Of a stretch of 64,000 nucleotides of DNA, positions 9,501 to 54,500 are shown in pieces. The stretch spans positions 3,968,001 to 4,032,000 of the forward strand of contig NC_087249.1 of NCBI RefSeq assembly GCF_037042905.1, in the 5' to 3' direction. The notes under the pieces were generated by a model that saw nothing but the letters and a program-made list of their open reading frames with translations, searched no databases and was not told where the DNA came from. This DNA is from Lytechinus pictus (Eukaryota). A program made the position numbers and the translations under genes. Each line of letters opens with the position of its first letter. The stretch's first letter is position 1.

Positions 9501-12500
9501 TGCAAAGTGACAGCTCCCAATACCCTGGTGTTTCAGTTGTACCTAGAAATTTAAGATATAAAATAATAATTTACATTGGTTATCAAGTTATCCTCATGTA
9601 CACCAGCAAATAAAGGTCATGAGGATTAGTGGATAACAGGACTTTGAACCACTAGGTCCATGGTTCAAATATCACCGCAATACCCCTGTTATAAGTGTTT
9701 TTCTACCGTAGGTTCTCTTCACCCAGGTATAGAAGAAAAATGTATCTTATGAAGATTTCTATAAAGAAGAAGAGTGTAGTGGTTTGATGGTAAACCATGT
9801 ATTCGTTTGTGCGCATATGGAAGAGCCGTGGTGTAGTGGTTCTGACTCTCGCCTTGTAAACAGAGGGTTGTGTGTTCGAATCCCACTGCGGTCTAGCATC
9901 CTTTGGCAAGGGATTAATCCACACTTTGCCATTCTCGACCCAGGCGCTAAATGGGTACCCGGTAGGGTGCGAAAGATTTTGTATGTTTGATTTAGCCAGC
10001 GCCATAATGAGGCTGCGATGAATGCAAGGAATGCCCCCCAGGGAGTGGAAATTGTGCACTTTTCGTGCGGGATTGAAATGAATCCATGACCGGGGTAATA
10101 ATATGCTGTAACGCGCTTTGAGCCATTCTGGGTAAAGCGCTTTATAAAAATTGGCTATTATTATTATTATTATATGTACTAGATTACCAGATTAGTAACT
10201 GGCAAGAAGAAATTCAATGTAGGCTCAAGTGCCTAATCGGGGTAGACATGTGTGTCTGTATAAATCAACTCACCTGTTGATGTCTTGGGAGAGATTTGGT
10301 GAGACAGATGTGGAACCTCATTGCAAGCAAGAATCTAAGTCCACATTCATCTAGAGTTTCACCTACAGAGAGTCAGACAAAAACATTTTTGTTTGTATAT
10401 TCATCTCGTCAAGTGCATTCATCCTTCTTTTCGCATTATCCATCACATTCACAAGCTGTTATCACAACAAATTTGGCTAAGCTTTCATGAAATGGCCATG
10501 AGAATCAATCTTGTCTTTGTAGAATCAGGATATTATTAAAATTCAAACCCTCACAAACATTTCAGTGTACTTACTTTTACGATGCATTTTTGCCAACTTA
10601 TGTGACAGCCAGGGTTTTCAATTCTTTGTTACTTTGAATAAGATGACCTAAATACATGTACATTGCATTACGATCAAAACAATGGTGATGATGATATTCA
10701 TCATTTCCCATCAGAATTGTTAATAGTTGCAATTCATTGCAAACTTTAAAGTTAAGGAGTCCAGATTAAACAACTAACCTGCATGAGATGAATCTGAATC
10801 ATCAACTGTTGCATAACCCGCTCCTTCTCTGGCTATCACAGTACCTGGAACATGAAAGGAAATAGAACAATGGGTTTGCTGAAAAAAATTGTACATGTGT
10901 AGCATACTGATTTACAAATGATACTTCAATATCTACTTATTGAACCATAAATATCTGTATAAAAATATATTTATTGGTGAAAAACTTGTACTATGATCAT
11001 ATTACAAATATTTGCAGCATGTACGCATGGATACACTGAGGTATCTGATAATTGTAAAGCTATTTTTCTCACCTGCACTTCCTCCACTATGTGGTGTAAT
11101 CTCTGTCTTGGTAGAAGCAATAGTATCAGCAAGAGCTAGAAGATGCATCTGATCCAGAGAGGATAAACCTGGTAGATGCATATGAGTCAGATAGTTGGTA
11201 AGTAGCTGGGCTTGTCCTACAGTGAAGTATGTAGGGTCTTTGAGTTTACTGGCCAATGATGCTGCACCATCTTGAGGTGATCTAAGTTCACCTTCTGCAT
11301 CAAGAGAAGATGGAAATGCCTCTAAGCTGGTCGAAAAGAGCTGGGTGTAGTCCTGAGCATCTACTGTAGTGATTTCATCTGGTGGACTAAGAATGCTGGT
11401 TGTTCGAGTTGCCCTATTGACAGCAGGAGCGGTTGTGACGGTGACAGGTGTGTCTGCTGATGTGAGACGGTAGAGTGGAAGAGGTGGTACTGATACAAGT
11501 TCTATGTAGTCTAGCTTGGGACCACTGTCATCAAGGACAGAGGATTCAACTGGACTGTGTGCCACTGAAAGTGTTCGCAAGCTACGTCGAAACTTTGCTT
11601 CCTCATCATCCTGGTCTCTGTCTTGTGTGACACTAGCCAGGAGGGACTGCTTGACTGCATCCTCTCCAGCGATGCAGTTAACCAGATGAACCAGGATGGC
11701 CTTGACTCTTCGAATCTTCCCACTGCTCATCAAACCCATGAGTTGTTTAGGATGGTACTGTGGAAGAACAGGACATGTGGAGTACGATATTTCAAAGAGT
11801 CCAAAGTCTTGCTTGATATCATCTTTGTCATCCTCCTGCTCTTGGATAGAAGACATCATTGCTGACTCTCGGAGGAGCTCAGACATGTCATTGTAAGATT
11901 TCTCTCTGTCTGTTCTTGACATAGGGATTGTCTGGAGATTAACAGACAAACTGGAATTTGTGCTCTTCTGAGAGACAAGTGTGTCTGTTGTGCTTGGAAC
12001 TGGTCTTCTATACTTTCGTCTCCTGGATCTCCAATTTTCCTCTCTCCACTGACTATACACATGCATCTCATTCTGCAAGCCGACGACAAGAATTCCTGCT
12101 CTCACCCAAGAGAGCATCTTGGAATGTGGTGCAATTCCATCAACTGAACTCAAGTTGACTGTTCTAAGTGGTAGCCACCTTAAGCTGGTGGTTTCCCCCA
12201 TGGTTGCCACTCGTTGGAGACCTGTTTGCTGTGTTATGATATCATCAGGTATGCCATTAGCTCCTGCTTCTACAAATTCTGTTGAAACAGGAGCAAAGAC
12301 AACAACTTTGGACCCCATGCCAACAGTGAGAATATGAGTGCCATCCTCTTTGGATACCCAAGAGAGCTGTACTGGGAGTCCAGCATCATCATACTGTGAC
12401 TGTTTGGCTTTGAGGATGCTGCGCTTGCGTTGCGTCAGGACAGCTGGTAGGTTCTCAGGAGATGGGGGACTGCCACAACTTGAGTTTGGAGATGGTGAGA

Positions 12501-15500
12501 TGTGGAGGAAGTCATTCACCTTTGAGCTTCGCTTCATTGTCTTGTAGTTGATCACCTCTGATTCTGGAACTTCATCATCTTCCTGTCGCATCCAAGCTTT
12601 GAGGTCGAGCATCCCAAGGTCAATCGCTTCTTCAATCATCCATTCTGATCCTCCAGTAGACTCACACTCATATATAGCCAACTTCAACGGAATCAGGTCC
12701 GTATTGTGGTGTTCATGGTGTGGATTTGTCCTGAAAATGCAAGCAATGCGTCCATTGTAGGCAGAGCTCAGTGCAACTGGTAAACCTGCAACACCAAGAG
12801 AACTATCGGTCTCAACCTGTACAAGCAGCTTCCACTCCTCCCAACTATAATCAGCTCTTGTGAAATCATCTTCTTTGGACGGATCAATTTCCCCTGGCAA
12901 ATCCTCACCGTGATCAAAACTGCTTTGGGAACCATCACCTGATGACATATTGCACGTCCAGAAGCGCAGTTTGCCATCTGAACAAGCTGTTGCAAAGAGG
13001 TAGGGTGCAACACAAGCTGGGTAAATGCTGGAGGAACTAAGATGACCTGCTGCTGGAGTCGCACTGACAACTTCAACCCCAACAGGAAGATCTAGCTTCT
13101 GACTGCACACCTTCCGGGAGAATGTTTTTATCTTGCTGGAAACTTGATTGGTACTCTTCTCAGAGTCATACTGATTGGATGCTTCTCCATCTGAGAAATC
13201 ACTGGAAGAATCATCTGGAATATCATCATCTAGCTGGGATTCCTCATCAGACTCTAGGCCATCACATGGAACTGGAGGAAACAGAAATAATACACCAATG
13301 ATTACGTGTACTTGCAAAATTTAAAAACATTTCGAGGACATATTCATCTCTTCATCGAAAGACAAAATGAACAGGGAACCACTGACAATGATCAGTTGTG
13401 ATAGATCCAGAGTCCATTCATGTATTTCAAGGTGGGACATGGTATGTCGTATTATAAGATTTCTGGCAATCAACTGCAGTTGCCTTATAATTTCTTTTTA
13501 TGTATCATGTATCAATACTGTATATAATTTACTTGAAATTAAACATATTGTCAACTAAACCTTGGACATGACCACTTATTCATGACATTTCATGAAAGCA
13601 AGGAGACAGCTACATGTATGTATAACAAATATTTTATTCATATGAACTGGATAAGGGTACAGAACAAATCTGTAGAAGGCAAATTCAAAATAAAGTCCCC
13701 TCTTGGATCTGCTGTGTCTTCAGAAGAATGGGGGAAATAATGAAGGTGAAAGGAGGGGGGGGGGGGGGGGGGGAGGAATCCCAATATGTAACTTGCCTCT
13801 GACTTTTCTAAGGTTAACACACTCCTCAGAGAGCAGACTCACCTCCACCCTTGGACACGTCCCTCTCCAGCCGAACGTACCACATATGTACCATGGACTC
13901 CCCTGTCAGTTTCCTCTCCACAACCACCAGGAAGAAGCGCTCCTCAAAGAGACTGGTGTGTAGAGGTGAGGAGCTGGTACTGCCTAGTCGGTGACTGGAC
14001 CGTGACTGATGGATCTTGCTGTCTGGACCTGAGATGAACTGCTGCTGGTAAACATGCATCAACTGTACATTCTGCCAATTCTGTGGAGGGGGGAAGAACC
14101 AAGGTATAATAAACAGGAAACTGTGCAATACGAAAATGAAAGTATTGCATGAAATGATGCATGACTTAAAAGTACAGTGCCCAGTACCTTAGAAAAAAAT
14201 CAATGCTACATGCGCATTTGGTTCAAAATACTGACCAGGAACCAATAAGAAGTGTTCTTTCATACTTGCTATTCATTGCTAAGCTTTGTGTTACAGAACT
14301 CTGAACTGATAAGGGGGGAGCATCTAGTTGAATCCATGTCTAGAGATCATATGTAGCAAATATTCAGTCAGTGATTTTTAAAGACAACTCTTATAAGCCA
14401 CTGAAATCCTTACATCATACTGGCATAGAGTAAATTAATCAGTAAACCACTGAAACAAGTGGAGCGGCTCTGGCAGTCTCGACCGCATTACGCAATTCAA
14501 TATAGCAGCAGTGCTTACTCTGAAAACTACTATTAAACTAGGGCAGGATGTAATACTTGTTTAGCCTTATGTCGAAGTTTCATGAACTAGGTCTGTATAC
14601 TTTCTAAGTTTATGCTGTCATTTCAAAAACTTAACCTTCGGTTAAGATATGATGTTGACGCCGCCTATAGTCTCGCTCTGCTATGCAGGCGATACAAAAA
14701 CTATTTGTAAAATGAATGCTCTGCACATTATTGGTTTAGAATCCTACCTGTTTGGCATCATTGAGTGTGTCCAGCTCAATGATACATCCTGGTCTAGATG
14801 TAGACTGAAGACTGATGACCTGAGGACACTTCTGACCTTTCTTCTCGTCATCGTCTTCACTGTTTTCATCTGTGTTCTGGAGCAGGAATGCTGTGACTGG
14901 AGAGCTACTACTCAGATATCCCTGGAAAGGAAATGCAATAAATGTGAAAGAAAACCTTGTGAATTGCAAAAATTTATTCATAAACTTTGTTACAATTTTG
15001 TGCAAATCTTACATATCAAGTTATCCCTTGTTTAATGTGCTGCAAATGAATTGAAAATAAAAACATGATTGCAAAATCTTCACTTATCATTAATTTTTCT
15101 ACAATAAGAAAATTATTGGTTTAGAAAATGTACAAAGTCAAAAGAAATTTTGAAATGAAATGATGGTGTAATCATTGGCTCTGTCCAAGTTGCAAAGATA
15201 CCTGTAGGTTCTAATGCTACATGTATAATCACACCAACCATTCTGTATGTTATTGGAAATTAAGTTGGTCTGGACTCAGTTTTGCAGATGTGAGTGTGGC
15301 ATGACACTAACCTCAAGTTGATTGCTGCTAGGAGTTATTTCATTAAGCAGTGAGCGAGCATCGATGACTGCCTGGAACAACCGAAGACTGTAACCATCGG
15401 ATGCTATGAAGCATGCACTGGGAGAGTTGGAGATGGGTCCCAAGCAAGAGCTTGGTAGAAGGCTGGGCATCCAAGCAACGTGGGAGAAGGCAGACACAAA

Positions 15501-39500: not shown

Positions 39501-42500
39501 CTGAAACAGTTATAATGCAGTCTCATGAGCGATTAAGACTGTTTGAGACAAGGTCCAGTATTAACACAGGGCATTAAACTGATCATAGGGCTAGTTATCA
39601 CCAATTATTGCACAGGTTATTGTGTGCGATCAATCATACAACTGAAGTTCATTATTTGTGCTTTGTGTCACTGGGCCCCGGTTTGGTGTGATATTAGGGA
39701 TTTAATCTTACCATCCTGGTTCCATGACAGGTTGCTAACCAGAGAGTCAATCTTAAAACTTCCAGTCTCTTCCCACTGATACTCAAGTTTATGCTGCATT
39801 CAAAGAAAAATGGAAACAAAATTAAAGAATTGAATGATTCAAATGGCAAAGAAGGTAGAAGTTAGAAAGATATAAGCAGTGGAATAAACAGGTACATGTC
39901 AACCGCGTAGCCAGGATTTTATTTTGGAGGGGGCGGTAAATGCACGCGAAGCGTGCCAACACTTACAGAGCGCGCGAAGCGCGCTCCCTAGGGGGTGGGT
40001 GCAGGGAGGGGGAGTTTCCCCCTCCCGCGCGAAGCTTTTGGTGTTTCATAAATTAAAATGAAAAGGAGCCGTCTCTCTTGTCTCTAGTACCTATATCAGC
40101 TCCAATACAGTTGACTATATTGTGATTTTGAACCTTGTTTTCATGAACCTTGTTTTCAAAAGTGATTGTGAACGCACAAAAAAGGAATACAATGGAGAAA
40201 ATTAATATAATAAGAACCCCGCCATGAAAAGGGTCCCGAGAAAAGGGTATTCTCAATGATGTATTGAATACTTCCCTTGGAAAGATCAGATTTGATTACA
40301 AACAATTTAGCGACAGTGCATATCTTTAAGTCGCAAAACAGAGGAAAAGAAGTGTATATGCCGGGAGGAAGATATTCCTCCCCGCGCAGAGCAATGTAAC
40401 TCTGAAATTTCAAAGAGCGGACGTTTCATCATATGCAGATATCTCTACTACCCCATCGGCTCTAATTCAATTGATTTTCTAAGATTATTGAACTTCATTA
40501 CAAGGAAAATAGTGCGCAAAAAGTTGAAACTTCTGTGATTTATTGAAATTACATAAAACAGGATGCCTAATTTCTTTGACTTATCCTGAAGCGCTTCATT
40601 TTGAATTATAAAGAAACTTTAGTGTCATTCAAAATTTCAAACTGAGGGCGCAAAACAGGACAGGAGATGAATGTGCAGGGAAATGACATGAATTTGATAA
40701 AAAATATTGTACTTTTTTATTTAATACGACACAAATTTTATACCTTCCTCTTTTAAAATTAGGAACCTGTTTGCCCCCAAATTATGGTTGTTTAGAAATG
40801 AGCTGAAAAGCGGGAGAAGTTGACTTAATGGAGGTGACGGCATAAATTGATATAAAGATTTTACCCGCCCGGAGCCGAACCGACCAGAAGTTGCGCGATC
40901 AATAAAAAAAAAAGATAACTTCATATACTTCGGCCTAACCTTACTCTAATTCCATGCCCCAATTTATACATTTGAACTTTAACTGGCAAGAAACACATAT
41001 ATACATGTAGCTGAGGTGGAAAAACAGGGTTGGGAAACAATGGAGAACTTCAGTATTGTCATTTAACCGCGCGCAGCACGGAAGCAAAATTCACATATAA
41101 ATTTAGAGCAAGAGTGAAGGAGTTTCTCTTTTGAGAAAAAAAATAAAGAATAAAAAGAAAAAAAAAACACAAAGCTACCTTTCTTCCCTTTCCTCCCTTC
41201 CCTTTTCCTTTCCTCCTCTCTTTTTTCCCTTCCTTTTTTTCTTTTTGGGGACGTTTTGGGGGGGGCGGCCGCCCCCACCGCCCCCCCCCTGGCTACGCAC
41301 CTGTATATCAATATGAGGTTGTATGAAAAAAGATAGAAAGAGGGAGAGACATAGAGATAGAAAGATATAAAGCAAAATGAGAGAAGAGGAGAGACATATA
41401 AATCAGTTTACAGAGAAACTTGTGCATGTAGAGAAGGGGAAAGTAAAGAAGAGACAGAGAAAGATTCAAGAGAAAGAGTAAAAATTTAACAAATTTTCTC
41501 AGGATTTCAGCTGTTATCGTAATCAATAATTTAAAGGTCAAGTTCACCCCAGGTCCGGGAATATGTTGAATTAAATAAATAAAGAAAAATCAAATAAGCA
41601 TAATGCTGAAAATTTCATCAAAATCGGATGTAAAATAAGAAAGTTATGAGGTTTTAAACTTATTTTCATTTTTTTCACAAAACAATGAGACCCTATATGC
41701 ACAACTCAGTGACATACAAATGAGACAGACGAGAATGTGGCTGACTCACTATTTTCTTTTTTTACTTTGAATTATACAATATTTCATTTTTTTTTTTACA
41801 GATTTGACAATAAGGGCCATTTTGACTGAACCATAATTGTATTAATGTAATTCCACATGTTCAGGTGGGCCAACGAGGAGAAAATAAGAATATTTCACAT
41901 TTCAATATTTCATATGATAAAATAAAAAAGAAATAATGAGTGGATGATGTCATTAGTCTCATTTACATGCCGACCAGGATGTGCATATAATTGTTTTGTG
42001 AAATAAGCAAAACTTTAAAATGTCAGCACTTTCTTATTTTACATGGGATTTTGATGAAATTTTCAGTGTTATGCTTGTTGGATTTTTTCTTTTTATTCAA
42101 ATCAACGTTTCATTGGGGTAGACTTGTCCTTTAACAATAATCAGGGATTACTACATACATGTACATGGCTTCAACGTGAGATGCAATAAAACCATGGCGA
42201 TTCATAGAAAATTTTAGTCATATTCGGTTTATTGTACATTGATTGCTTGTAAAGTACATGGATTTTTCTTGCGAAGTATGGCTATAAAAATGAAGAAAAA
42301 AAAAAGATCTGATGTAGCCAGACATCTGGCTTTATGGCAATCGCTTCAACAACATCATAAGGTGGTTTCAGACTGCCTCGTAGTTCGTCAGTTCCAGGTA
42401 TTTTCTGATCGGGAAATTTACCCGATCAGAAAATACCAGGTAATATTGGCAATGTGAAAGCAAATTACGCGTAATATCCCCGAAAGAAAATACCCACTAA

Positions 42501-45500
42501 ATAGAAGGTACTTGGCAAAATTACGAGAACTTTCGCGGGGATTTTTCCAAGGTCGCAGGTATTTTGGCAATGTGAAAGCAATTTACGGGAACTTTTAGCC
42601 CAGCGTGTAGTTGGGCGCGGGCGCCGTGGGTGGCTGCTGAGCTAGTGGTTTTGAATCTCGCGCCTTGCCTGCTTATCAGACCATACTGCCCATGCTCCTA
42701 ACTTCAGGAATGATATCCCGAAGGGTATGTTTCGGGGCAGTGTGAATGCAGGAATAATTAATGGGTATTTTATAGCCTGAAAAAGTTCCCGTAATTTAAC
42801 GGGGATTCTTATGATCGAGGCGGTTTGAAACCACCTATAGAGACCATTTTCCTGAAAGGCTGAAACCTTATTCATAATTCAAGTATGTGGCATTTTCACA
42901 AATCAGGCAGTCTTCAGAGAAAACAGCCAATCTTCAATTTTGCTCTAAAATATACCACAATCAATTTCTAAACCACCGCAGAGTCATTCTATTTCAAATG
43001 TCACTTTAAATCTGGAAAAAAAATATTCACGATCAGTTTATGTGACTTGTTTCTCAACTTTCTCTAATAACATAGTTCAATATGATAGTGCCATTCACAA
43101 AAGGATTCAAAACCAAAAATATTGAAAGCAAATGTCACATAAAAAATGACAGGCTAAGCAAGTAGGGGTAAAAAAGTAAGTTTAATTGTATTATGAACAT
43201 CGAGTAGCTTCATGAAAATAACTTAGAGATTGAAGAAAAAAAATCATACACCAAAGAAAAGTATGAAAAGGTTTAACCCAATTTATTGTGCTATAATACT
43301 TTTTTTTTCAAACAGTGATACTTTTTTTTTTTTGGGGGGGGGCTAGAACAAGATCTAAAAAAAGGTGATTTTTATGGATAATGGTTGTACATACATGTAC
43401 TATGCTTTATGATATATAAAAAATTTGAGCTAGCTAGTAAACTATATAGCATCTTCTCACTTGTACTGTACATTCTAAATTGAATAGGTTTTTGGAAAAA
43501 CAAATTTTATACATGTACATGTATGTACATAAACTATGTGCGTTCATAAAGATAGGAATACCTACAAATGCATGTAAATGTCTACCCACATATAATGTTG
43601 CAAGAAAATGTCCAGTTGAAAAATGCATGAGTATTGATTTTGATCCCAAACACCAAATTGTCTGTCTGCCTACGCTTAAAGGGAGATAGCCTAGCCTCCG
43701 CTTTGATGGATGTCGTTAACGTTAATACTGTTATCACATAGCAGATTAATGAGTTGTATTGACTTTATTGCGGATGAGCATTACATAGTGAGCTCTAATT
43801 TTTGTACAAGGCTGACAGATGGAAACAGGATCCTGATTCATAATTTACAAGTTGAAAGTTTTTGCTGCAATATTCTCAAATTTTACCAATTGATTTTGCC
43901 AACAACAAATGAGTTCCATACCTCTAGCATTTAAAAAAAAATTATTTTCAAGAAAAAGTGCCATTGTCTGCTCTGTATTACAAAGACCCCCTACATGAGT
44001 ATCTTATTACAACATCGCAAAATAAAATGTCTCTTTTTGGGGTTCGGTTTTAATCAGATAATTGCCTATTAAACAATTTATAATTAATTTAGAAGGCCAT
44101 GAAGAGGAATGAGTAATGAAAGGAAGTCATTGAGCATAAATTAGTTATCATAAGAAAGTTCCAACGACCCCACAATGTATGCATCACTATGAAAAACTGT
44201 TGCACAGATACCCCTCTCCCAAACTCTACCATTTGGGACAGCCTGCAAGTTGGCTGTATATGTATCCGGACTGTACATTGCAGTTTTAGGCATTTTGCAT
44301 CATATCAATGTGCAACTTTTCTTTCCAAATATACCTGTAGACCTAACTGATGATAGACCAAACCATCATATCTAGACTCATAGAAATATGAGGAGAGAGA
44401 GGGAGAGTACAGCAAGAAACAGAAAGCAAAGCAGAAAATTTCAAGGGGATGAGGGAGGGAGAGAGAGAGAGAGAGAGCAAAACAGAGAGAGAGAAACAGA
44501 CAGAATGAACGTCAAATTATACATATTTGTGGGCAGGCCAAAGATCTAGGTAGCATCCCCCATCCAGGCATCGGTCTAAACTCTTGGCCAATCAAAAGCC
44601 ACCTGTAGTGTGAAACTTCCCCCCTCTGCAAATCCTGGGTTTTAAAAGTTTGGGGAAGGGGAATTACATGGCTTACTTTTCCTTAAAAAGTGGAACACAT
44701 ACTTACCTCACCTACCATATTTACTATATCGATATTAAATCTCGGAAGATAGCAGACCAGTTTATTGGTGGATTTGAGCCAAGCTAGGCAATAGTGAAAA
44801 CCTTCTTATAAAGGAAAACTAGGACTTGAATTGATTTTTTTCGGAAAAGCAAGAGGAATTATTTACTTGACAACATGAACATGCAACTGCTAACCGTTTG
44901 TCTTTTTATGCCAATTTTGGGTGAGTACAAAATACACAAAAAGTTTTGTTCGCATGTCAGTGATTAGAGTGATACAAACTATCACTATTTCATTCCTATT
45001 GTGTATTTGAATCCGAAATGAAAATCTGAAATTATGAAAGCATGAATATGAATGGCAATGTTTCAATCTCTAATTGCAGTGTATATACAATACTCTAGAT
45101 TTTTGTTATTCAAATCCTAGTTCTTTCAAGCATTAAATTAAAAAAATACAGAATCCAGATTTTGAATAGACTTCAATTCAATAGCAGACTCGGTGACAAT
45201 CATAAAAAAAACACCTTCTGGGTACATGTAGTATTACCGAGTATGAAATTTTCTATTGAATTCTCTGCGATGACGAACATCTTCAGAATTATGAAATTTT
45301 TTGTAATACAAAACTCTGAAGAGTCACACATGGATTCAGATTATTTTAAATAAAGAAAAGCACTGAGAAAAATTTTCTTTAAAATACCAAGGAAGCATGA
45401 AATTAGATTGTACTATATGTGCAGAGGGTGTAAACTGCCTTAAAATAAATAAGTATGTCTTAAAGGCTTTTTTCCCTGTAACAATGGTGCACCATGACCC

Positions 45501-48500
45501 AATTCTGTGCTTTGGCAGGGCCTCTAATGTCTCATCAAATCTCCACTGATACTGATCAATCAGAAGGTGTGGAAATGTAAACTGGAAATATACATGTAAA
45601 GTACATTTTTTCTCTTTTCAAATGCACACTTTCTCTAGGGAAATCTATGTCATTTATCTATGATTGCTACGCAGATTGATAAGTGAGACATGAGAGGCTC
45701 TTACATAAACATCCTAAAGTCAGGAGAAACTGGGGTAATCCAACTCCAAGCATTCAATCAGGGGGTTATTTTTTCTAGCATTTTGCGATAGTCAGGATAG
45801 CGTGATCGTTTATGATAGTTCAACAGTACGCATAATCTTCCATGACACAAAAAGATTGGTATCATAATTTTATAATCATTTCACTTGCAAAGCGTATTTC
45901 ATGATTTACTTTCAATGCTCACAATGTTCATGCCAAATCTATCAAGTTCTACAATTGGTAAAAAACTGAGATGTCATTTGAGGATGTTTTTCATTTTCAG
46001 TGACTTTAATTTTATACATGCTGACAGACAAATGGATCTTTCTTTTTATCATGACTGCCAATAATGCTATTAAACTGTAAGACATTATGAACCAGTGTAA
46101 TACATGTTTTCAATTTTTTTTTTCTCAATACCATTTTCTGTTTACCACAAAACATTGTCACATTAAACCAACAAGGCAAAATGCATTCTAACTACTTCTT
46201 CCTCCTGTGTATTTTCTTCGCTGGTGGGTGTGCGCAATTCTCTAATCGGATTCCAATATTATAAATGATACGCCCGCCCAACAAATTACTGCCAGACACG
46301 ATCAGCTAAGGGGAATCCCCAGGGTTTATTTGGTATTTCAGGCTTGTAAATTTCCTCTGCTCCATCTTCCATAACGATACATCAAAACTCTCAGGCGAAG
46401 CACATCAAAGTCAACAACTAGAATGTCAACCCTTTGAAGTTTGGTATTGCATGTAAATATGAAGCAGTTCAAATGTCCGCCCCTAAACCTGAGTACAATC
46501 AATTGTACACATACTGTACATGTAGATGTTTTGACAGAAACAAAAGACTTGTTCATACATTATACATGTATGTCCCAATTGACCTTTCATATCAACAATG
46601 GATATCTGATTAATTGACCTAGGCTCGAACTGTTGCATAACAACCAATAAAAACACACATCCTTGTCTCATATGCAAAGCCAATTTGAGCTCTCGCTTCT
46701 AAATAGTAAATGGCTGTAGGGCCGTCTGCACCAGCCCCAGTTTTCAAATAATCGCACTACAGGTATATCTGAGCCGGCAAATTATCCCGATCTGAACAAT
46801 CTTGAGATTATTTGTAATGGAGACACCATCATCGCGATAGTTCACCGGATTAATCTCAATATTGCAATCCTAAGTCAACTTTAATAGGATTATTTGCAAA
46901 ATAGTGCGTTATTTACGAATTATCCCTTATTTATTCACGGTGTCACACCATAATGCATTAATGCCTCACTCAAGCACGAATTGCTCTTCTTGGGCTGGTG
47001 GAGACAGGGTTACTTGAATCTTGAGATTAATCGCAAAGAGGGCCGATCAGGCTAAAATCTTGAGATTGAGCAAACTATGGCTATAGTGCAGCACCGCCTA
47101 ATGTGTGTCCAAAGGATGTAGTATCATTTCTTGCCTGAGCACGAAAGAGAAGAAGTGGTCTCTACTATATTGGAAGGAAATCAAAACACCTGATGCACAC
47201 TCATGATGAGAAGTTCATGATAAAATGCTTTTGACTGGTGGTGCAACAGCCATGAAAGGTCACTTGATAATTAAAGGTAAAGATACTGGAAAGTACAAAA
47301 GGTATGAGTAGATCATGTGACCCAGAAATCTCATTCTATTTTTGAGAGTCACCTTCCCTCCTCTTTCTATAGATTTCTATACATCTCTATCCATCTCTCT
47401 TTTATTCCTCTCTCTCTCTGCCTCCTTCTCTCTCTTTTCTTTCTGCCACTCACTTGTTCCCTTTCTCATCCTCTCATTCTTTAGCTCCGTCTACATGTAT
47501 GAATAACTGTGTGTCATAATTGAATCATCATCATCTCTGCATTTGGCAGTGACGTTACCTCAGGCATGACTAGTTCTATTCAAGGGCCTCACTCCTGCGA
47601 AGTGAAATTAGAAATTTAGGTGAAATGGAAATTGATAATCAAATTGGTCTCTTACTCAAAGGCAGAAAAACGAAATGGTTTTGGAATGTAGAGAGAGAGG
47701 GTATAAGAGTTTGGTATTATTTAAAGAGACCATATAGCCATGTGACAAATGTTACAGTCAAGTGTATACTCCAAAGGACAAAAAAGGCACAGTACATTGG
47801 ATCAGTACAGTACCTTTATATCATGACCTTGTGTACTTGGACTGAAAAAGGGGGTACTTTTCTCATACTATCATGAATATACATGTACATTATTTATTAA
47901 AAAAACCTTTAAATGCAAAATTTATGATAGTGCGCCATTTTCATGGAACATCATAAATCCTGAAGGCTTCAACAAATGCTTTTTGTACACATGTATGTAC
48001 TGTATGTACATGTAGCTCAGCAGGGCAACTCCATAAAATACCTTTTTGTACGTCCAACCCCATTTTTCTCATGTTTTACTTCACTTCATAAACTGACCCA
48101 AGTCATGGTCCTTTGAGAACATTATAGACTGTCAAAAGAACAAGAAATCAGAAACATAAATTTCTTAAAGGCCCTATATATAGGGGGTGGGATGTACCTA
48201 TTTTATGGAATTTCCTAGCAAAATAATAATGTTCAGTAGTAGTGTAGACTATATACATGTAGATGATCATGACATGTAGGTATGTACATGGATGAATGAA
48301 TGCTAATTATGGAACCCTGTTTGCTATTTTATACTGGCTGCTATGTCTGGCCATCCTCTGACAAATTTTACGGTTTTCAGTGACAATATATGTTTTATAC
48401 ATGTAGGGACCTATACATGTATGGGGAATAAAAGAAAATGTGTACATTATATACAGCATACTCAAGAAAAACAATAACTTGTGGAATTGGATAAATCTGA

Positions 48501-51500
48501 ATAAAGAGGCTGATTTTCACAACTACCGGTACCATGTTTACAGAATGTCAGAAATCTGTCTGAGTGTTTGCCATCCCACATCATTAGCTCATCAAATTCT
48601 TGTACGCACTTAACGGTTATTGGTAAATGGACTAAAAAAGGCAGAATTGACACTTGTAATAAGACCTTTTGAGTCACTTCACTCTGATGGATGACTTCAT
48701 CATGTGGTTCTGATACACAGTGGTATTCAACCACTGAAACTTGAACTGTTATTATTTATGAGCCTATCCATGTTTAGGGGATTTACAGGATCATATACAC
48801 CTAATCTGTTGATTCCTTGGACTCATCAGGTTCCAGTCCTGACACAGAAAACTCATGTCACAGTGGCAAAACTCTGTTTTGAAAAGTTATTCACCAACCA
48901 ATGGTATGCAACCAATTTCATTCCAAATTTAGAATCGTCAAATGTTTGCTGTCTCATATTAAAAAAACCCAGTTCACAATAGGTCGATTATGAATTGATA
49001 TGGTCTGCTCAAATATCACATCTAATGAATGGTCCTACTTTCAGATAAAAAACCATACACTGTACAAAGTCATTTTCAGAAGCCTTTTTTGTAGTGGTGA
49101 TTAAACATGTTTACAAATAATGTGTTTACAATGTACTTAGTACATATGACTCCAAGATTGGGAATAAATATGTACATCAATCAGATAAAACAAATATGTA
49201 CAGGTGCATGTGAGCATGCTACTAGTACTGTACATGTTCATATTTTCATTGTCATGTATATTGTACATGTAACATGAACATATTCATATTTCATATTTTC
49301 ATCATATAAGGACTAAATGGTTTCTGAAAATTTCCAATACTATACATGTATACAATACCCAAGATTTATTATTAAAAATACATGTATGTTTTGCATACAT
49401 TATGCATGTGAATACCAAATATTTTCTGAATTTGTTTGAGCATTTGCGTACACAATAAAAGCAATGAACCACTACACTGTACTCTCCATTGAATCTATGT
49501 ATACACAACATTTGTCAATGGAAATACTTTTCCCTAGTACTTCACAATCTAAGAGTTGTTTTCTAATTTTTCTTGTCCCAACAGCATGTTCCGCCCAGTT
49601 TGACTGGTTGATGAACTACAGACAACTCAACGCAGGAGCACCGCAAAGACAGACAGACTTTGGTTTCATGAAACCAAGTACCACTCCTAAACCTCTGGGT
49701 GCATTACCAAAGAAACGCAGAGATGGCACTGCCTTTGGATTAGGGGCCGCAAACGAATTCGCTGGGGGCAGCAGTAGCTACACGAACCAGGACACCGCTC
49801 CTGTTGATGCTGGCATAGGTGACACTTCTGGGGGCAACGCGCAAGGTAGCGACTGGGACATCAATGCAGCTGGCACTGACTACGGCGGAAACAGCAATGG
49901 TGGTGATTATGGTGGCACTGGTGGTGTCTCAGGAGGCAATGGTGGTGGATTTGGAGGAGGTAGCAATGGTGAAGGAGGCTCCTTTGCAGAAGGTGGCAAT
50001 CTTAACCCAGGTTATGATGACAGCATGCAGAACCTTGCTAATGCATCTGCTGGTAGCATTGCTGGTATTGTCATTGGTGTCATCATTCTATTGTGTGTCT
50101 TGGCTGGAGTGTCCTTCTTTGTCATGAGGCAAGTCCATCGAAAGGTGCAGGTGAATGCAACACGAGCATAATCATCTTTGAAAAACTTCAACTATAAGAC
50201 TGTATTAACGCTGCTATTAAAGTTATATTCAAAACATATTGACAATGGAATCTACAGTGTTTTTTTTTTCTTGATAAACTGAATGATAATTCCAATCTAA
50301 TGAATATCTAAATGTGTGAATGTCATTAAAACCAACCATGGAATTGTGGTGTCTATGAAAAATCAATCAGTGTCTACTTTAAATATTCTTCCAAAGTCAT
50401 GAGCAGAAATGTACACGTACATGAAATCTAGTTTGATTTTCAAGTCTTCAATCCCATCCCTCAAGTGATCTGTTTTCACTAAAGAGATACTAGTTTACTA
50501 TCTACTGTAGATTTCAATTACCTTTCAACAATCATTTGATTCATCAATTCTTTCTGAACTCCCTACTCCATTCATATATTTTTTCTGATTTCCCACCACC
50601 CACCCTCTCTCTGTCTCTGTCTTTCCTGCTGATCACACACACACACAATACTTTATTCCAGTGTCTCACTTTTGTTCTCCCTTTTCAATTTCTCATATCT
50701 TAAATTTTCATTGTAGTCCCGTAATAAAGTCTTTTGCATACCTCAAGATCTACTTTTTGCTTGATTAGCATTAATAATCTTCTTCCTGGTCATATATCCC
50801 AATATTTCAAGTGCTTTTCTACACTAGACATTTTGTTGTTACATTTTAAATGAATACATGCTCGTTAATGTCAATGCCAGTGAAATATAATGTTGTATCT
50901 TGTATAATAAACTGTGAAGTACAGTGTACATAACATATTCAATGGTCCACAGGTGTATGTTTCCTATGTCCAATGTAAAATTGGTTTCATACATGTATGG
51001 TAAGGCCCCCCGAAGTGTGTGAAGTCCCTGTTGTCTGCGCACACGCGTATCTGCGTGATTCTAGTAAGAAAATGTACCCAACAACCACAAACTTTACACA
51101 TGCAATACATAGAATGATATTCATTATAAAAAAAATCCAACTCCAAATGGTGGAAAATAATGAATTTTGGGGCATTTCATGTGACGGCCTCAAAATGCAG
51201 CCTTTCTCATCAAAATCCTGAATCATGTATGAATGGGTAATGTACAAAGACATGGGGGATCATTTTTTGTTAAATCTGAAAATGACTGGCCAAGGTTTTT
51301 TTTTTCAAGAAAATCATATATTTCTTTCAAATTTTTATGAGATTTTTGGTACACTTTAATACTCATAAGAATATATTAAAGGAACATTATCAACTGAAAA
51401 TTTTTCTGAAATAAACAGAAATTCATGTTAAAATATTCAATAGTTACACACGTATGTATGTGCACAGACATGGGGGCCCCTTCATAAAGTAGTGTACATG

Positions 51501-54500
51501 ATAGAAATAATAAATGATAGATGATGGTCAGGACTATATACATTGGATAATCATAGTCGGATATGTCTGTCAAATAGGACCCTCCTGGTGCCTGATACTC
51601 CACAACTTTATCAGACAACCATCCGGGTAAACTTTTATTTCCTGAACATTTAGTTTAATAAACCATCTTTGCTTTAATAGCCTGAAACTGCACTCTCATG
51701 TTACTTTACCTACATGTAATACTGGACTTATTCTTGTATGTCAAGGACCTAAATACAATGTTTTATCCAACAAAGTCTGTTTTTCTTGACAGTTGCTATA
51801 GTCAGATGAGTTTCTTAGCCAATCAAAACTGTCAGGACTGCCAGAAAACGAGAGCTTTTCATCAACATTTTTCATCTGACAACTTTCCTTGATTTTTAAT
51901 TGGCTGAGTAGCACAGTTCTTAAAGGTAACTGTCAGATTGGACACGTCAGATACATGTAACACATTGTACATACATGTACATGTACAAGGGCAGATGAGT
52001 CCTTAATGGAATGGTCAAGAAAAGAAAGCTACATGTATGACTGCATTCATTATCCATATATACTCACTATGCAGACAGTTTTCATGAGGGTCACAAAATA
52101 ATTGCTGATGATAATATTCTGCAATTGCTTCTCATTTGACCAACAATAGGTTTAATGCTTCTGCTTTGTTGGCAGAAACAAAGTTAAAAAATCCCCTTTA
52201 TAATATTACTTTATCAATGGTTAATAAATATCATAAATGAATTATTAAAAAACTTCTCGAACTTTTCAACATGGATAGCTCTTTCTACTTACATTTGAGT
52301 TCTTCTTTTGAGCAACTGGTGAAGGTTCAAATATATAGACCTGATTTGCATATGATGCAGCAATCTGCAATGAAAAACAAAATGGAAACAATATTATTTG
52401 GTTAAAGCAGGTTCAATAAATGTTAAATTGTTAGAGAAAGCATGTACACCCACTAGTACAATGCATGTTAAACAGGAGGTTCCATGACAATTATTCCACC
52501 CTAAATTACACACACTAATCGAATGACCAACTTCAACCCTGGGTTTACGTGTACCCAACCCTAAACCTAACCCTAAACCTAACATGAAACCCTATTGCAA
52601 CCCTAACCCTACATCATAGCAGAAATAGGCCAGAGCAATTGTTGCAGGAGCAAATGTCCCCAAACAGCATTATCTCCAAATTATAGTAACTATGTACAGT
52701 CGTCAGAGACATACATGTACTGTACATGTGCGATACCCACACTTTATAAAATAAAATCAAATCAAATTGGGAGACATGACATTTGCTCTGGCGACAATCG
52801 CTCCGAACGTTATTTCGTCTACATGTAGATATAGGGTAAGGGTTAGGGTTGCTATAGGGTTTTTATAGTGTAGGGTAAGGATAAGGTATAGTGTTAAATC
52901 CAGGTTTGATTCGTAATTTCATTAATGTGTGGAATCTGCAGCGGAGCAATTGTTGCCGGTGCGAATGTCCTGGAACCTCAAATTGACACTTTGATTGTAT
53001 ATTAAAGCAAAAATAACCTGGCAAATTTTTTTTTGTTATCCCCAGAAGCTATCGCGATATTTCCTACATATGTATTATTAATGTACAGTACTTCCATTTA
53101 ATTTCTGAAGTGTGCGATCAAAATACAGAACATTCTTGAAGTCATATAGTGGAAATACAATGTAGAAACTGACATGATATTTAACAGCTTTTTTTTTACC
53201 CAGTATGTCTTTGATTACACATGATCTACATGTACCAGATGCAACAAAACCGATTTATGTCTGTACTGCAGTACTTGTGTACATGTAGCATGGGGGGGGG
53301 GGGGGGGCTATAGTGTACATGTACATCAAAAGAACATAATTATATCTACAATGTATAATGTTGGCCCTACAGTGTACATGTACATGTACACCTGTAGTTA
53401 TAAAACATGTATCACCTACATGTACATGCACATGTGTTGGCCTACTGGTAAACACCCCCTTATTCTGATTTAAACATTTTCTTCAGTATTCCATTACATT
53501 TTTTATTCATTCCATTATTTTATTGTTCATGTGTAGAAAAATGTATTACAGATGTAAAAGTGTACCAGCAGATGCATATTACCCCCCCCCCCAAAAAAAA
53601 AAAGACTGCATGTACATTGTATGTACATGTACACAGATTTATAGCCAAGACCCCAATGTGAAATTCCATACATGTACACATAGTAGCCACGCTATTGAAG
53701 AGTACATACATGTAGACAGCCATACATGTATATGCCACGACCTACACTCTATCGGCACAAAGTGGGGGCACTATCTCCGTTCATTCATTCATTCGTTCAC
53801 TCATTCATTGATCAAGAGTATTCCGAAATGTGAAACCTACTGTACATTCCGAATTGTAAAACCTACTTTACAAGGGGGGAAATGCACATTCACAAGTATG
53901 TTGGTACCTGTACATGCATGCATGTGAGCACAAACCCTACAACATATTTTCCACTTGGAGCCACCTGTGTGTCTCAAGTACAGTCTTGGCATGCAGTGGG
54001 TTTTCTCTTTTCCTCTATTCAAGGGATGCTACGGGCTGAAAATATTAAATTCTTCATACATGTACATAGAGGAAAATTCACAGAGCACAATGCCAAAAAT
54101 TTCATTAAAAAAACAATTATGTCCAACAGTACAGTCAAGGTACACACATTCATGTACATGTACATAAAACTCTAGGATCCCCAAGGTTGTAAAACAGAAA
54201 TTTTGAAGAAAAAATGTGATCATATATATTTGGGCTGGCTACACTACTAAAGAGTGCCGTATCATGCAAAAACTGAAAGTACTGTATTTATAAAAAAGCT
54301 ATAAAATGCAAGTCTTGGAAGAATGTGTACACTCATATTTGATGAGTCCCACTTTCTGCATTAGGAGGCGCGATAGCTCAGTCGGTAGAGCGGGGGATTC
54401 GTATTCCGGTGACCCAGGTTCAATTCCCAGTTGGTGCGCTAGTGCCCTTTAGTAAGGCATTAATCCTCAATACCAGGTCCTTCGGAGCGGACCTTAAGCC

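Follow-up and report, generated by a model that had tools for sequence, protein, structure and literature searches.

LOC129260593, in the 64,000-nt stretch of Lytechinus pictus DNA analysed here (the window), is almost certainly a real, transcribed two-exon protein-coding gene that lies antisense within an intron of the gene DMXL. Taken as a whole, our results are probably best explained by a nested echinoid gene encoding a type I single-pass membrane protein with a role in transmembrane association. The gene is not a discovery: it is already annotated, with RefSeq predictions in five echinoid species, and uncharacterised. An earlier note on this DNA had described it as hidden, which does not hold, as RefSeq contains an identical protein for L. 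pictus along with annotated orthologs from another four echinoid species. The 210-aa spliced product is 100% identical to XP_054754533.2 (isoform X2), one of two RefSeq entries for the L. pictus gene (XP_054754533.2 / XP_054754531.2). Predicted orthologs are XP_041465632.1 / XP_041465631.1 in Lytechinus variegatus, XP_003725275.1 in Strongylocentrotus purpuratus, where it is named 'glycine-rich protein 23', XP_071507127.1 / XP_071502876.1 in Diadema antillarum and XP_072167197.1 in Diadema setosum. All of these entries represent the same gene. They were predicted automatically, and their names say little: the labels that databases give to the family (dermokine-like, keratin-like, glycine-rich cell wall protein) stem from artefactual low-complexity matches.

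The coding sequence, as read from the window, is formed by splicing 44875-44920 to 49585-50171 and comprises 633 nt for 210 aa (Table 1). The ATG at 44875 stands in an A(-3) context, the GTGAGT donor directly follows the last base of exon 1a at 44920, the acceptor reads ...CCCAACAG|C at 49585, and the stop codon is TAA at 50169-50171. Exon 2 forms a GC island, with a GC content of 0.50 vs 0.30-0.38 in its surroundings. The earlier note had given the exon and intron coordinates, the 46-nt exon, the intron phase, the product length and the N-terminus correctly to the base; raw sequence alone was enough to reconstruct exactly a split gene whose first exon has only 15 codons. On the upstream side, blastn alignment of the L. 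pictus and S. purpuratus loci yielded one block, 44443-44945, with 75% identity over 513 columns, and the Kozak context CAACATGAA is common to both species. The TATA-like box proposed upstream of the gene is present as TATAAAG near 44808 and is not kept elsewhere: S. purpuratus has TGAAAAG at this place, and the element is also not conserved in Diadema. Downstream, the ATTAAA and AATAAA motifs reported earlier are both present, and the distal AATAAA (50723) is probably the polyadenylation signal used.

Table 1 Features of the nested gene and its host gene in the window.
Feature	Position	Strand	Details
Putative promoter and 5' UTR region	44443..44874	+	blastn block with S. purpuratus locus
Exon 1a, coding	44875..44920	+	46 nt; codes for most of the signal peptide (Met1-Leu15, then the first base of codon 16)
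Nested-gene intron, phase 1	44921..49584	+	4,664 nt; GT..AG; GTGAGT...AACAG
Alternative first coding exon 1b	47225..47276	+	RefSeq isoform X1, MLLTGGATAMKGHLIIK-; without signal peptide
Exon 2, coding part	49585..50171	+	End of signal peptide, ectodomain, TM helix 174-196, tail, stop
3' UTR	50172..50766	+	ATTAAA 50216, AATAAA 50723; end point inferred
DMXL exon upstream of host intron	52293..52364	-	IAASYANQVYIFEPSPVAQKKNSN; donor GT
Host intron of DMXL	39794..52292	-	12,499 nt; contains the whole nested gene; splice sites read
DMXL exon downstream of host intron	39712..39793	-	Acceptor AG
Large DMXL exon region, part of Rav1p_C domain	11002..13317	-	Pfam PF12234, E 1.9e-14

Transcription is documented by RNA-derived contigs. 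The junction 44920/49585, which had been predicted from the DNA, is carried exactly by one contig of X15 at a depth of 25. The junction-bearing contig extends 116 nt beyond 50650, and RNA contigs of run X1 cover exon 2 and the 3' UTR, including 50018-50650. Two observations count against the gene reading: X15, a run whose kind is not on record, also covers the nested-gene intron at a depth of 8-20, and no exon reads were found in the sampled ~6% of each of the raw-read RNA runs X19 and X20.

The host gene was identified as DMXL because the open reading frame at 11002-13317 of the window matches Rav1p_C. The ortholog loci likewise reside, on the opposite strand, within genes whose 3405/3395-aa products have Rav1p_C and WD40 domains. 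In agreement with the antisense position given in the earlier note for a 12.5-kb intron between DMXL exons at 52293 and 39793, reading of the splice sites placed the whole nested gene in this intron. In tblastx comparisons, the upstream DMXL exon is 97% identical to that of S. purpuratus and 78% identical to that of D. setosum; for the downstream exon the values are 91% and 90%, respectively. In both of these species, the ortholog is flanked by the same two exons. Residence in the same DMXL intron is kept in Lytechinus, Strongylocentrotus and Diadema, lineages that diverged some 200-250 million years ago.

The gene structure is conserved along with its location. The 46-nt exon 1, its GT donor and the phase-1 intron are common to S. 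purpuratus and D. setosum, and the coding sequences rebuilt for these species translate exactly to their proteins. The GT/AG sites fall at the same codon position in L. pictus, S. purpuratus and D. setosum, and the orthologous introns measure 6,029 nt in S. purpuratus and 8,209 nt in D. setosum. The L. pictus protein is 78% identical to its S. purpuratus ortholog and 50% identical to those of Diadema (E values of 3.5e-120, 1.7e-80 and 6.3e-44 against the Lytechinus, Strongylocentrotus and Diadema clusters, respectively). The reading frame is intact in all three genera, and a dN/dS of 0.15 between L. pictus and S. purpuratus (0.05 for the transmembrane helix plus tail, 0.18 for the N-terminal module) indicates strong purifying selection on the family.

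As far as the searches found, the family appears to be restricted to echinoids, as the earlier note had surmised. An exhaustive profile (HMM) search covering 1.84 billion representative proteins returned no relative beyond this group, and two word-indexed searches at E ≤ 10, one using the family profile and the other just the transmembrane/tail region, yielded nothing past the three known clusters. Three marginal profile hits, i.e., a protist-like BspA-type ORF, a fungal protein and a bacterial YfaP-like protein, were rejected as matches to Gly-rich or transmembrane composition. The literature searched contains no mention of XP_003725275, LOC129260593 or a sea-urchin 'glycine-rich protein 23'. 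Echinoid restriction, purifying selection, a near-invariant transmembrane/tail region and the conserved antisense position in a DMXL intron are absent from the searched literature and from the database names. LOC129260593 offers a sensible, if unexceptional, target for functional studies of lineage-specific sea-urchin cell-surface proteins.

Type I topology with one membrane pass is very probable from the predicted layout of the protein, in which a signal peptide is followed by a disordered, acidic ectodomain, then by a transmembrane helix with a glycine zipper and finally by a basic tail of 14 aa. The predictions thereby bear out the architecture read earlier from the letters alone, including the Gly-rich, acidic nature of the ectodomain and the 23-aa length of the helix. 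The signal region is hydrophobic, and hydropathy reaches its maximum of 3.09 at residues 177-195. Signal peptide cleavage is predicted at ...ILACSA|QFDW and would leave an invariant N-terminal Gln. There follows a conserved module of about 33 aa (QFDWL..APQRQ..FGFM..STTPxP) and then a dibasic site, which reads KKRR61 in Lytechinus, KQRR in Strongylocentrotus and SWRR in Diadema. The ectodomain has a Gly content of 24% and a pI of 4.2; it is rich in Gly, Ser, Asn and Asp and contains 8 Lys/Arg. The transmembrane helix and juxtamembrane tail, ASAGSIAGIVIGVIILLCVLAGVSFFVMRQVHRKVQ, are invariant except for one C/S column, in which S. purpuratus has Ser; Q20-L24 at the N-terminus do not vary either. 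The outer half of the helix contains the glycine zipper G172xxxG176xxxG180. AlphaFold2 modelled a helix at residues 158-209 (pLDDT up to 83) and left residues 31-160 without structure. With a mean pLDDT of 46, the model is too disordered for a meaningful fold search.

These features are consistent with the following scenario. Removal of the cleavable, predicted signal peptide would yield a mature protein of about 19 kDa, residing at the cell surface or in membranes of the secretory pathway. Its disordered ectodomain may form a flexible mucin- or proteoglycan-like extension, probably O-glycosylated at STTPKP. Glycine zippers drive packing of transmembrane helices. The GxxxGxxxG helix, the most constrained part of the protein, may accordingly be suited to self-association or to binding of a membrane partner. 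We put this transmembrane-association mechanism forward tentatively and rate its chances somewhat below even.

Comparison with characterised proteins yielded analogues. A Pfam scan of exon 2 identified no family, and sub-threshold matches fell in the transmembrane region alone. The best of these was Podoplanin (15.4 bits vs a cut-off of 30, E 0.024, transmembrane region only), while Syndecan and Glycophorin_A gave no Pfam match. All PDB profile matches were isolated single-pass transmembrane helices (e.g., the EphA2 transmembrane dimer, CD4, DAP12), headed by the EphA2 segment (2k9y) with an E value of 0.005 over 27 residues of transmembrane composition. The likeness to EphA2 consists of the glycine zipper, and no homology extends outside the helix. 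In a language-model search with the whole protein, the neighbours included glycophorin, podoplanin, syndecan, TMEM154 and SNORC, with scores of at most 0.81 that serve as leads only. Small vertebrate type I sialomucin- or proteoglycan-like proteins of this kind (glycophorin A, podoplanin, syndecans, SNORC, TMEM154) share a short, disordered Ser/Thr/Gly-rich ectodomain, a small-xxx-small transmembrane helix and a short basic tail, and are the nearest language-model neighbours (0.72-0.81). However, the scores are sub-significant and confined to the transmembrane region, and family-specific motifs are absent. Proteins of the glycophorin/podoplanin/syndecan type are analogues of the LOC129260593 product, not relatives.

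In principle, the conserved N-terminus could point to a different function, that of a membrane-tethered peptide precursor. Once the signal peptide is gone, the N-terminal Gln would cyclise to pyroglutamate, and processing at the dibasic site would free a signalling peptide of ~40 aa. In line with this idea, Q20 does not vary across the three genera, nor do 22 of the ~33 residues after it; each genus has an RR pair near residue 60, and the module evolves under the constraint given above. On the other hand, conservation is stronger still in the transmembrane helix and tail, parts that a pure precursor could do without. An amidation signal and repeated peptide copies are both missing, and residues 20-65 had no neuropeptide-like neighbours in the language-model search (best score 0.61, to be taken as a lead only). 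We therefore consider such a precursor unlikely. Kinship with the skeletogenic protein P16 was weighed as well, either as a divergent member of that family or as a functional analogue acting as a surface regulator of biomineral deposition in skeletogenic cells. The reported layout of P16 (N-terminal signal sequence, one transmembrane domain near the C-terminus, type I arrangement at the PMC surface) matches that of the protein studied here, whose ectodomain is acidic and Gly-rich, and the gene was found only in echinoids, animals with skeletons of calcite. Against this stand the profile and word-indexed database searches, which detected no similarity: no P16-type or other echinoderm paralog emerged at E ≤ 1e-3 in the exhaustive search or at E ≤ 10 in the word-indexed ones. 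Genomic context differs, too. Sp-P16 is reported to adjoin immediately the Gly-rich gene(s) Sp-Hypp_2998/2999 (Glean3:18406/18407) (PMC2909932), while the S. purpuratus ortholog sits in DMXL, the sole other gene called within 10 kb on each side. Finally, P16 has been described as possibly without tryptic sites, in contrast to the 8 Lys/Arg of the ectodomain here. Membership in the P16 family, or a P16-like function, is very unlikely. The earlier note had claimed a resemblance in layout only, and this much stands; the database searches do not support kinship. Both ideas recur in a bolder proposal, which is about as improbable as the peptide precursor. The protein might be an echinoid-specific membrane-tethered pro-peptide, whose invariant pyroglutamyl QFDWL...STTPxP module is freed at the conserved dibasic site as a new signalling peptide while an invariant glycine-zipper transmembrane stub is left behind, or an independently arisen P16-like surface regulator of biomineralisation. 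Either would be a lineage-restricted surface molecule whose place in one DMXL intron predates the separation of Diadema and camarodonts.

Constraint that is greatest in the transmembrane helix and tail is typical of single-pass accessory subunits, and the product could conceivably be a small subunit of this kind, bound through these parts to a multi-pass transporter or pump and possibly tied to the V-ATPase-related role of the host. The low dN/dS of precisely this region and the long-stable residence in the DMXL intron speak for it. However, the idea is pure inference, nested genes usually have no functional tie to their hosts, and Pfam, exhaustive profile and PDB profile searches revealed no similarity to any known accessory subunit, making it a poor prospect, scarcely better than P16 membership. 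The least probable of all readings, with a chance close to nil, is a spurious open reading frame or a non-coding transcript mis-annotated as coding. Artefactual database names and the lack of a Pfam domain would fit it. Nevertheless, spliced RNA is present, and three findings effectively refute the idea: a frame that is intact, at an unchanged exon phase, in three genera, the invariant blocks at both ends of the protein, and the overall dN/dS. The reading we prefer remains the nested gene for a type I membrane protein.

A second transcript form begins with the alternative exon 1b. It does not encode a signal peptide, and this counts against the type I reading. Isoform X1 was rejected as the main form on account of the missing signal peptide and the absence of the exon 1b ATG and GT donor in S. 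purpuratus. RNA contigs of run X1 leave the intron that separates exon 1b from exon 2 uncovered. They are contiguous over 46929-47257, one of them contains the joint 47276/49585 (GT..AG), and exon 1b probably starts at or before 46929.

The nested gene LOC129260593 lies on the plus strand within an intron of a minus-strand gene, for which the exon boundaries give an intron length of 12,499 nt. The host is identified as DMXL because one of its minus-strand reading frames matches the Pfam family Rav1p_C. In Strongylocentrotus purpuratus and Diadema setosum, the orthologs also reside antisense within genes whose products (3405 and 3395 aa) bear Rav1p_C and WD40 domains, and in each of the three species tblastx placed the same pair of DMXL exons on either side of the nested gene. 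The antisense location in a DMXL intron claimed in the earlier note is thus borne out by splice sites, by the Rav1p_C match and by the matching arrangement in three species. The same holds for its two-exon reconstruction, of which ATG, donor, acceptor, stop, 210-aa product and both poly(A) signal motifs are all present exactly as described. The start codon was read from the sequence in the context CAACATGAA, the frame of exon 2 is open from the acceptor to the stop codon, and joining the exons by script yielded a 633-nt CDS for 210 aa with the N-terminus MNMQLLTVCLFMPILACSAQFDW. Exon 2 forms a GC island (GC 0.50 vs 0.30-0.38 in its surroundings).

Features of the nested gene and its DMXL host (positions in the window)
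Feature	Position	Strand	Remarks
DMXL exon upstream of host intron	ends 52293	minus	GT donor
DMXL exon downstream of host intron	begins 39793	minus	preceded by AG
ORF matching Rav1p_C	11002-13317	minus	E 1.9e-14
Exon 1a, coding part	44875-44920	plus	ATG at 44875; 46 nt, then GTGAGT
Exon 1b	47225-47276	plus	first coding exon of RefSeq isoform X1; joint 47276/49585 in run X1
Exon 2, coding part	49585-50171	plus	polypyrimidine tract and AACAG upstream; TAA at 50169-50171
N-terminal segment, residues 20-62	49585-49721	plus	
ATTAAA	50216	plus	downstream of stop
AATAAA	50723	plus	downstream of stop
CT-rich stretch (ctctctctgtctctgtct), then (CA)n run	50590-50650	plus	3' UTR; CT-rich stretch short
High-depth intronic segments	46690-47087, 47884-48281		
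157-bp conserved intronic block	47172-47328		13758-13908 in the S. purpuratus locus L001
Further conserved intronic blocks	45481-45912, 46192-46386, 47443-47697, 48550-48878		

With exon 2 as query, a search of 5.8 billion protein clusters retrieved exactly three, namely a Lytechinus cluster (99% identity to the exon 2 product), S. purpuratus XP_003725275.1, "glycine-rich protein 23" (78%), and a Diadema cluster (50%); the cluster listing contains RefSeq predictions from L. variegatus, L. pictus, D. antillarum and D. setosum. The spliced 210-aa protein agrees at every residue with XP_054754533.2 ("dermokine-like isoform X2", L. pictus) and differs at three positions from an L. variegatus isoform, so that the window almost certainly derives from L. 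pictus. Contrary to the earlier note, the gene is therefore not hidden but publicly annotated in RefSeq, yet uncharacterised, and it is unmentioned in the literature searched. Within this one orthogroup (records P0001-P0010), RefSeq names conflict: dermokine-like, keratin type I cytoskeletal 10-like, glycine-rich cell wall structural protein 1-like, glycine-rich protein 23 and ATP-dependent RNA helicase A-like (earlier "RNA helicase A-like"). These names are artefacts of low-complexity matching, driven by the Gly-rich region. Pfam holds no family for the protein.

The CDSs rebuilt for S. purpuratus and D. setosum share the 46-nt first exon and the phase-1 intron (6,029 and 8,209 nt, respectively) with GT/AG sites, and their translations equal the database proteins exactly. 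By the Nei-Gojobori method, dN/dS between L. pictus and S. purpuratus is 0.15 for the whole CDS, 0.18 for the N-terminal module, 0.15 for the Gly-rich region and 0.05 for TM plus tail. None of the counter-indications named in advance, i.e., dN/dS near 1, frameshifts or a different exon in cDNA, was seen for the form starting with exon 1a.

The predicted layout also stands: a signal peptide is followed by a Gly-rich acidic ectodomain (154 aa, 24% Gly, pI 4.2), a TM helix (residues 174-196, hydropathy maximum 3.09) and the tail RQVHRKVQVNATRA, from which we infer a single-pass type I membrane protein. An alignment of five sequences delimits three strongly conserved segments. The first takes in the last residues of the signal peptide and the mature N-terminus (MPI.ACSA|QFDWL), the second is an APQRQ..FGFM..STTPxP module, after which a dibasic pair occurs near residue 60, and the third is a 36-residue block, ASAGSIAGIVIGVIILLCVLAGVSFFVMRQVHRKVQ, which spans the TM helix, extends into the tail and varies in a single column (C/S, Ser in S. 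purpuratus). The sequence between them abounds in Gly, Ser, Asn and Asp, and short conserved islands (GDTS, GS[DE]W, DYGGNS) are scattered through it. AlphaFold2, run on the alignment, places helices only in the signal/N-terminal region and at 158-209, while 31-160 are devoid of confident structure. PDB profile matches are isolated single-pass TM helices, and the nearest proteins by language-model features are of the small type I sialomucin-like kind, which at scores of <=0.81 serve as leads only.

The most constrained element is the TM helix, which carries a GxxxGxxxG glycine zipper (G172, G176, G180), together with the membrane-proximal tail. This constraint points to helix-helix association as the functional core: the helix would self-associate or bind a membrane partner, and the acidic, disordered ectodomain with its likely O-glycosylation site may serve as a flexible extension. 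The N-terminal segment is also compatible with a shed pyroglutamyl peptide, marked by its N-terminal Gln and the dibasic site, as QFDWL is invariant and RR near residue 60 is conserved; a pure precursor role, however, is at odds with constraint on TM and tail that is even stronger than that on the N-terminal module. In Diadema, an additional RR occurs at residues 27-28.

To look for relatives beyond echinoids, 1.84 billion representative proteins were searched exhaustively with an HMM; this returned only the family's own two clusters and three marginal matches (a protist-like ORF, a fungus, a bacterium), which were rejected on inspection as Gly-rich or TM look-alikes. Word-indexed searches (E <= 10) with the family profile and with TM/tail alone found nothing beyond the same three clusters, and the entire collection contains just 11 candidates that have any 5-residue word in common with TM/tail. 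P16-type proteins were absent from the results of all these searches. P16 has been described as a PMC-surface protein with signal sequence and TM domain, possibly without tryptic sites, and its gene is reported to adjoin the Gly-rich gene(s) Glean3:18406/18407 (PMC2909932). Judged by this published description and by database searches, the nested protein resembles P16 in design, but its ectodomain has eight Lys/Arg, and its gene sits inside DMXL, which in S. purpuratus is the sole other gene called within 10 kb. Membership of the P16 family is thus not supported. The nested gene and type I layout of the earlier note stand, whereas the "hidden" status does not, nor does kinship with P16, for which the note itself had claimed only a likeness of layout.

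With regard to transcription, the joint 44920/49585 (GT..AG) is present at depth 25 in a contig from sequencing run X15, the kind of which is unrecorded and in which the intron also appears at depth 8-20. Sequencing run X1 (distinct from RefSeq isoform X1) behaves as clean RNA, since nothing in it covers the intron that separates exon 1b from exon 2. Its contigs cover exon 2 and extend through the 3' UTR past 50650, which makes the distal AATAAA the likelier poly(A) signal. RNA runs X19 and X20 gave zero exon reads in the ~6% of raw reads sampled from each, and transcript strand was therefore assigned from the GT..AG sites rather than from read orientation. RefSeq isoform X1 is devoid of a signal peptide, and S. 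purpuratus has neither the ATG nor the GT donor of exon 1b at the aligned positions. We take exon 1b as a Lytechinus-specific alternative 5' exon that is probably minor or non-productive. Both high-depth intronic segments show very high depth in 4/4 runs, with contig depth up to thousands and many loose ends, and look like interspersed repeats transcribed elsewhere in the genome. The exon 1b transcripts of run X1 apparently begin in or beside the first of them.

The promoter and exon 1 region is 75% identical to S. purpuratus across ~500 bp; the proposed TATA-like box, TATAAAG, is not conserved. The 157-bp block, which overlaps exon 1b, shows 81% identity between the two species, and a downstream GGTATGAGT is conserved in S. 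purpuratus, unlike the ATG and donor of exon 1b. The block may represent a conserved regulatory element or a non-coding exon, not coding sequence. The four further intronic blocks resemble the S. purpuratus locus whichever of the six frames is compared. Their conservation is thus at the nucleotide level, and they are candidates for cis-regulatory modules acting on DMXL or on the nested gene.
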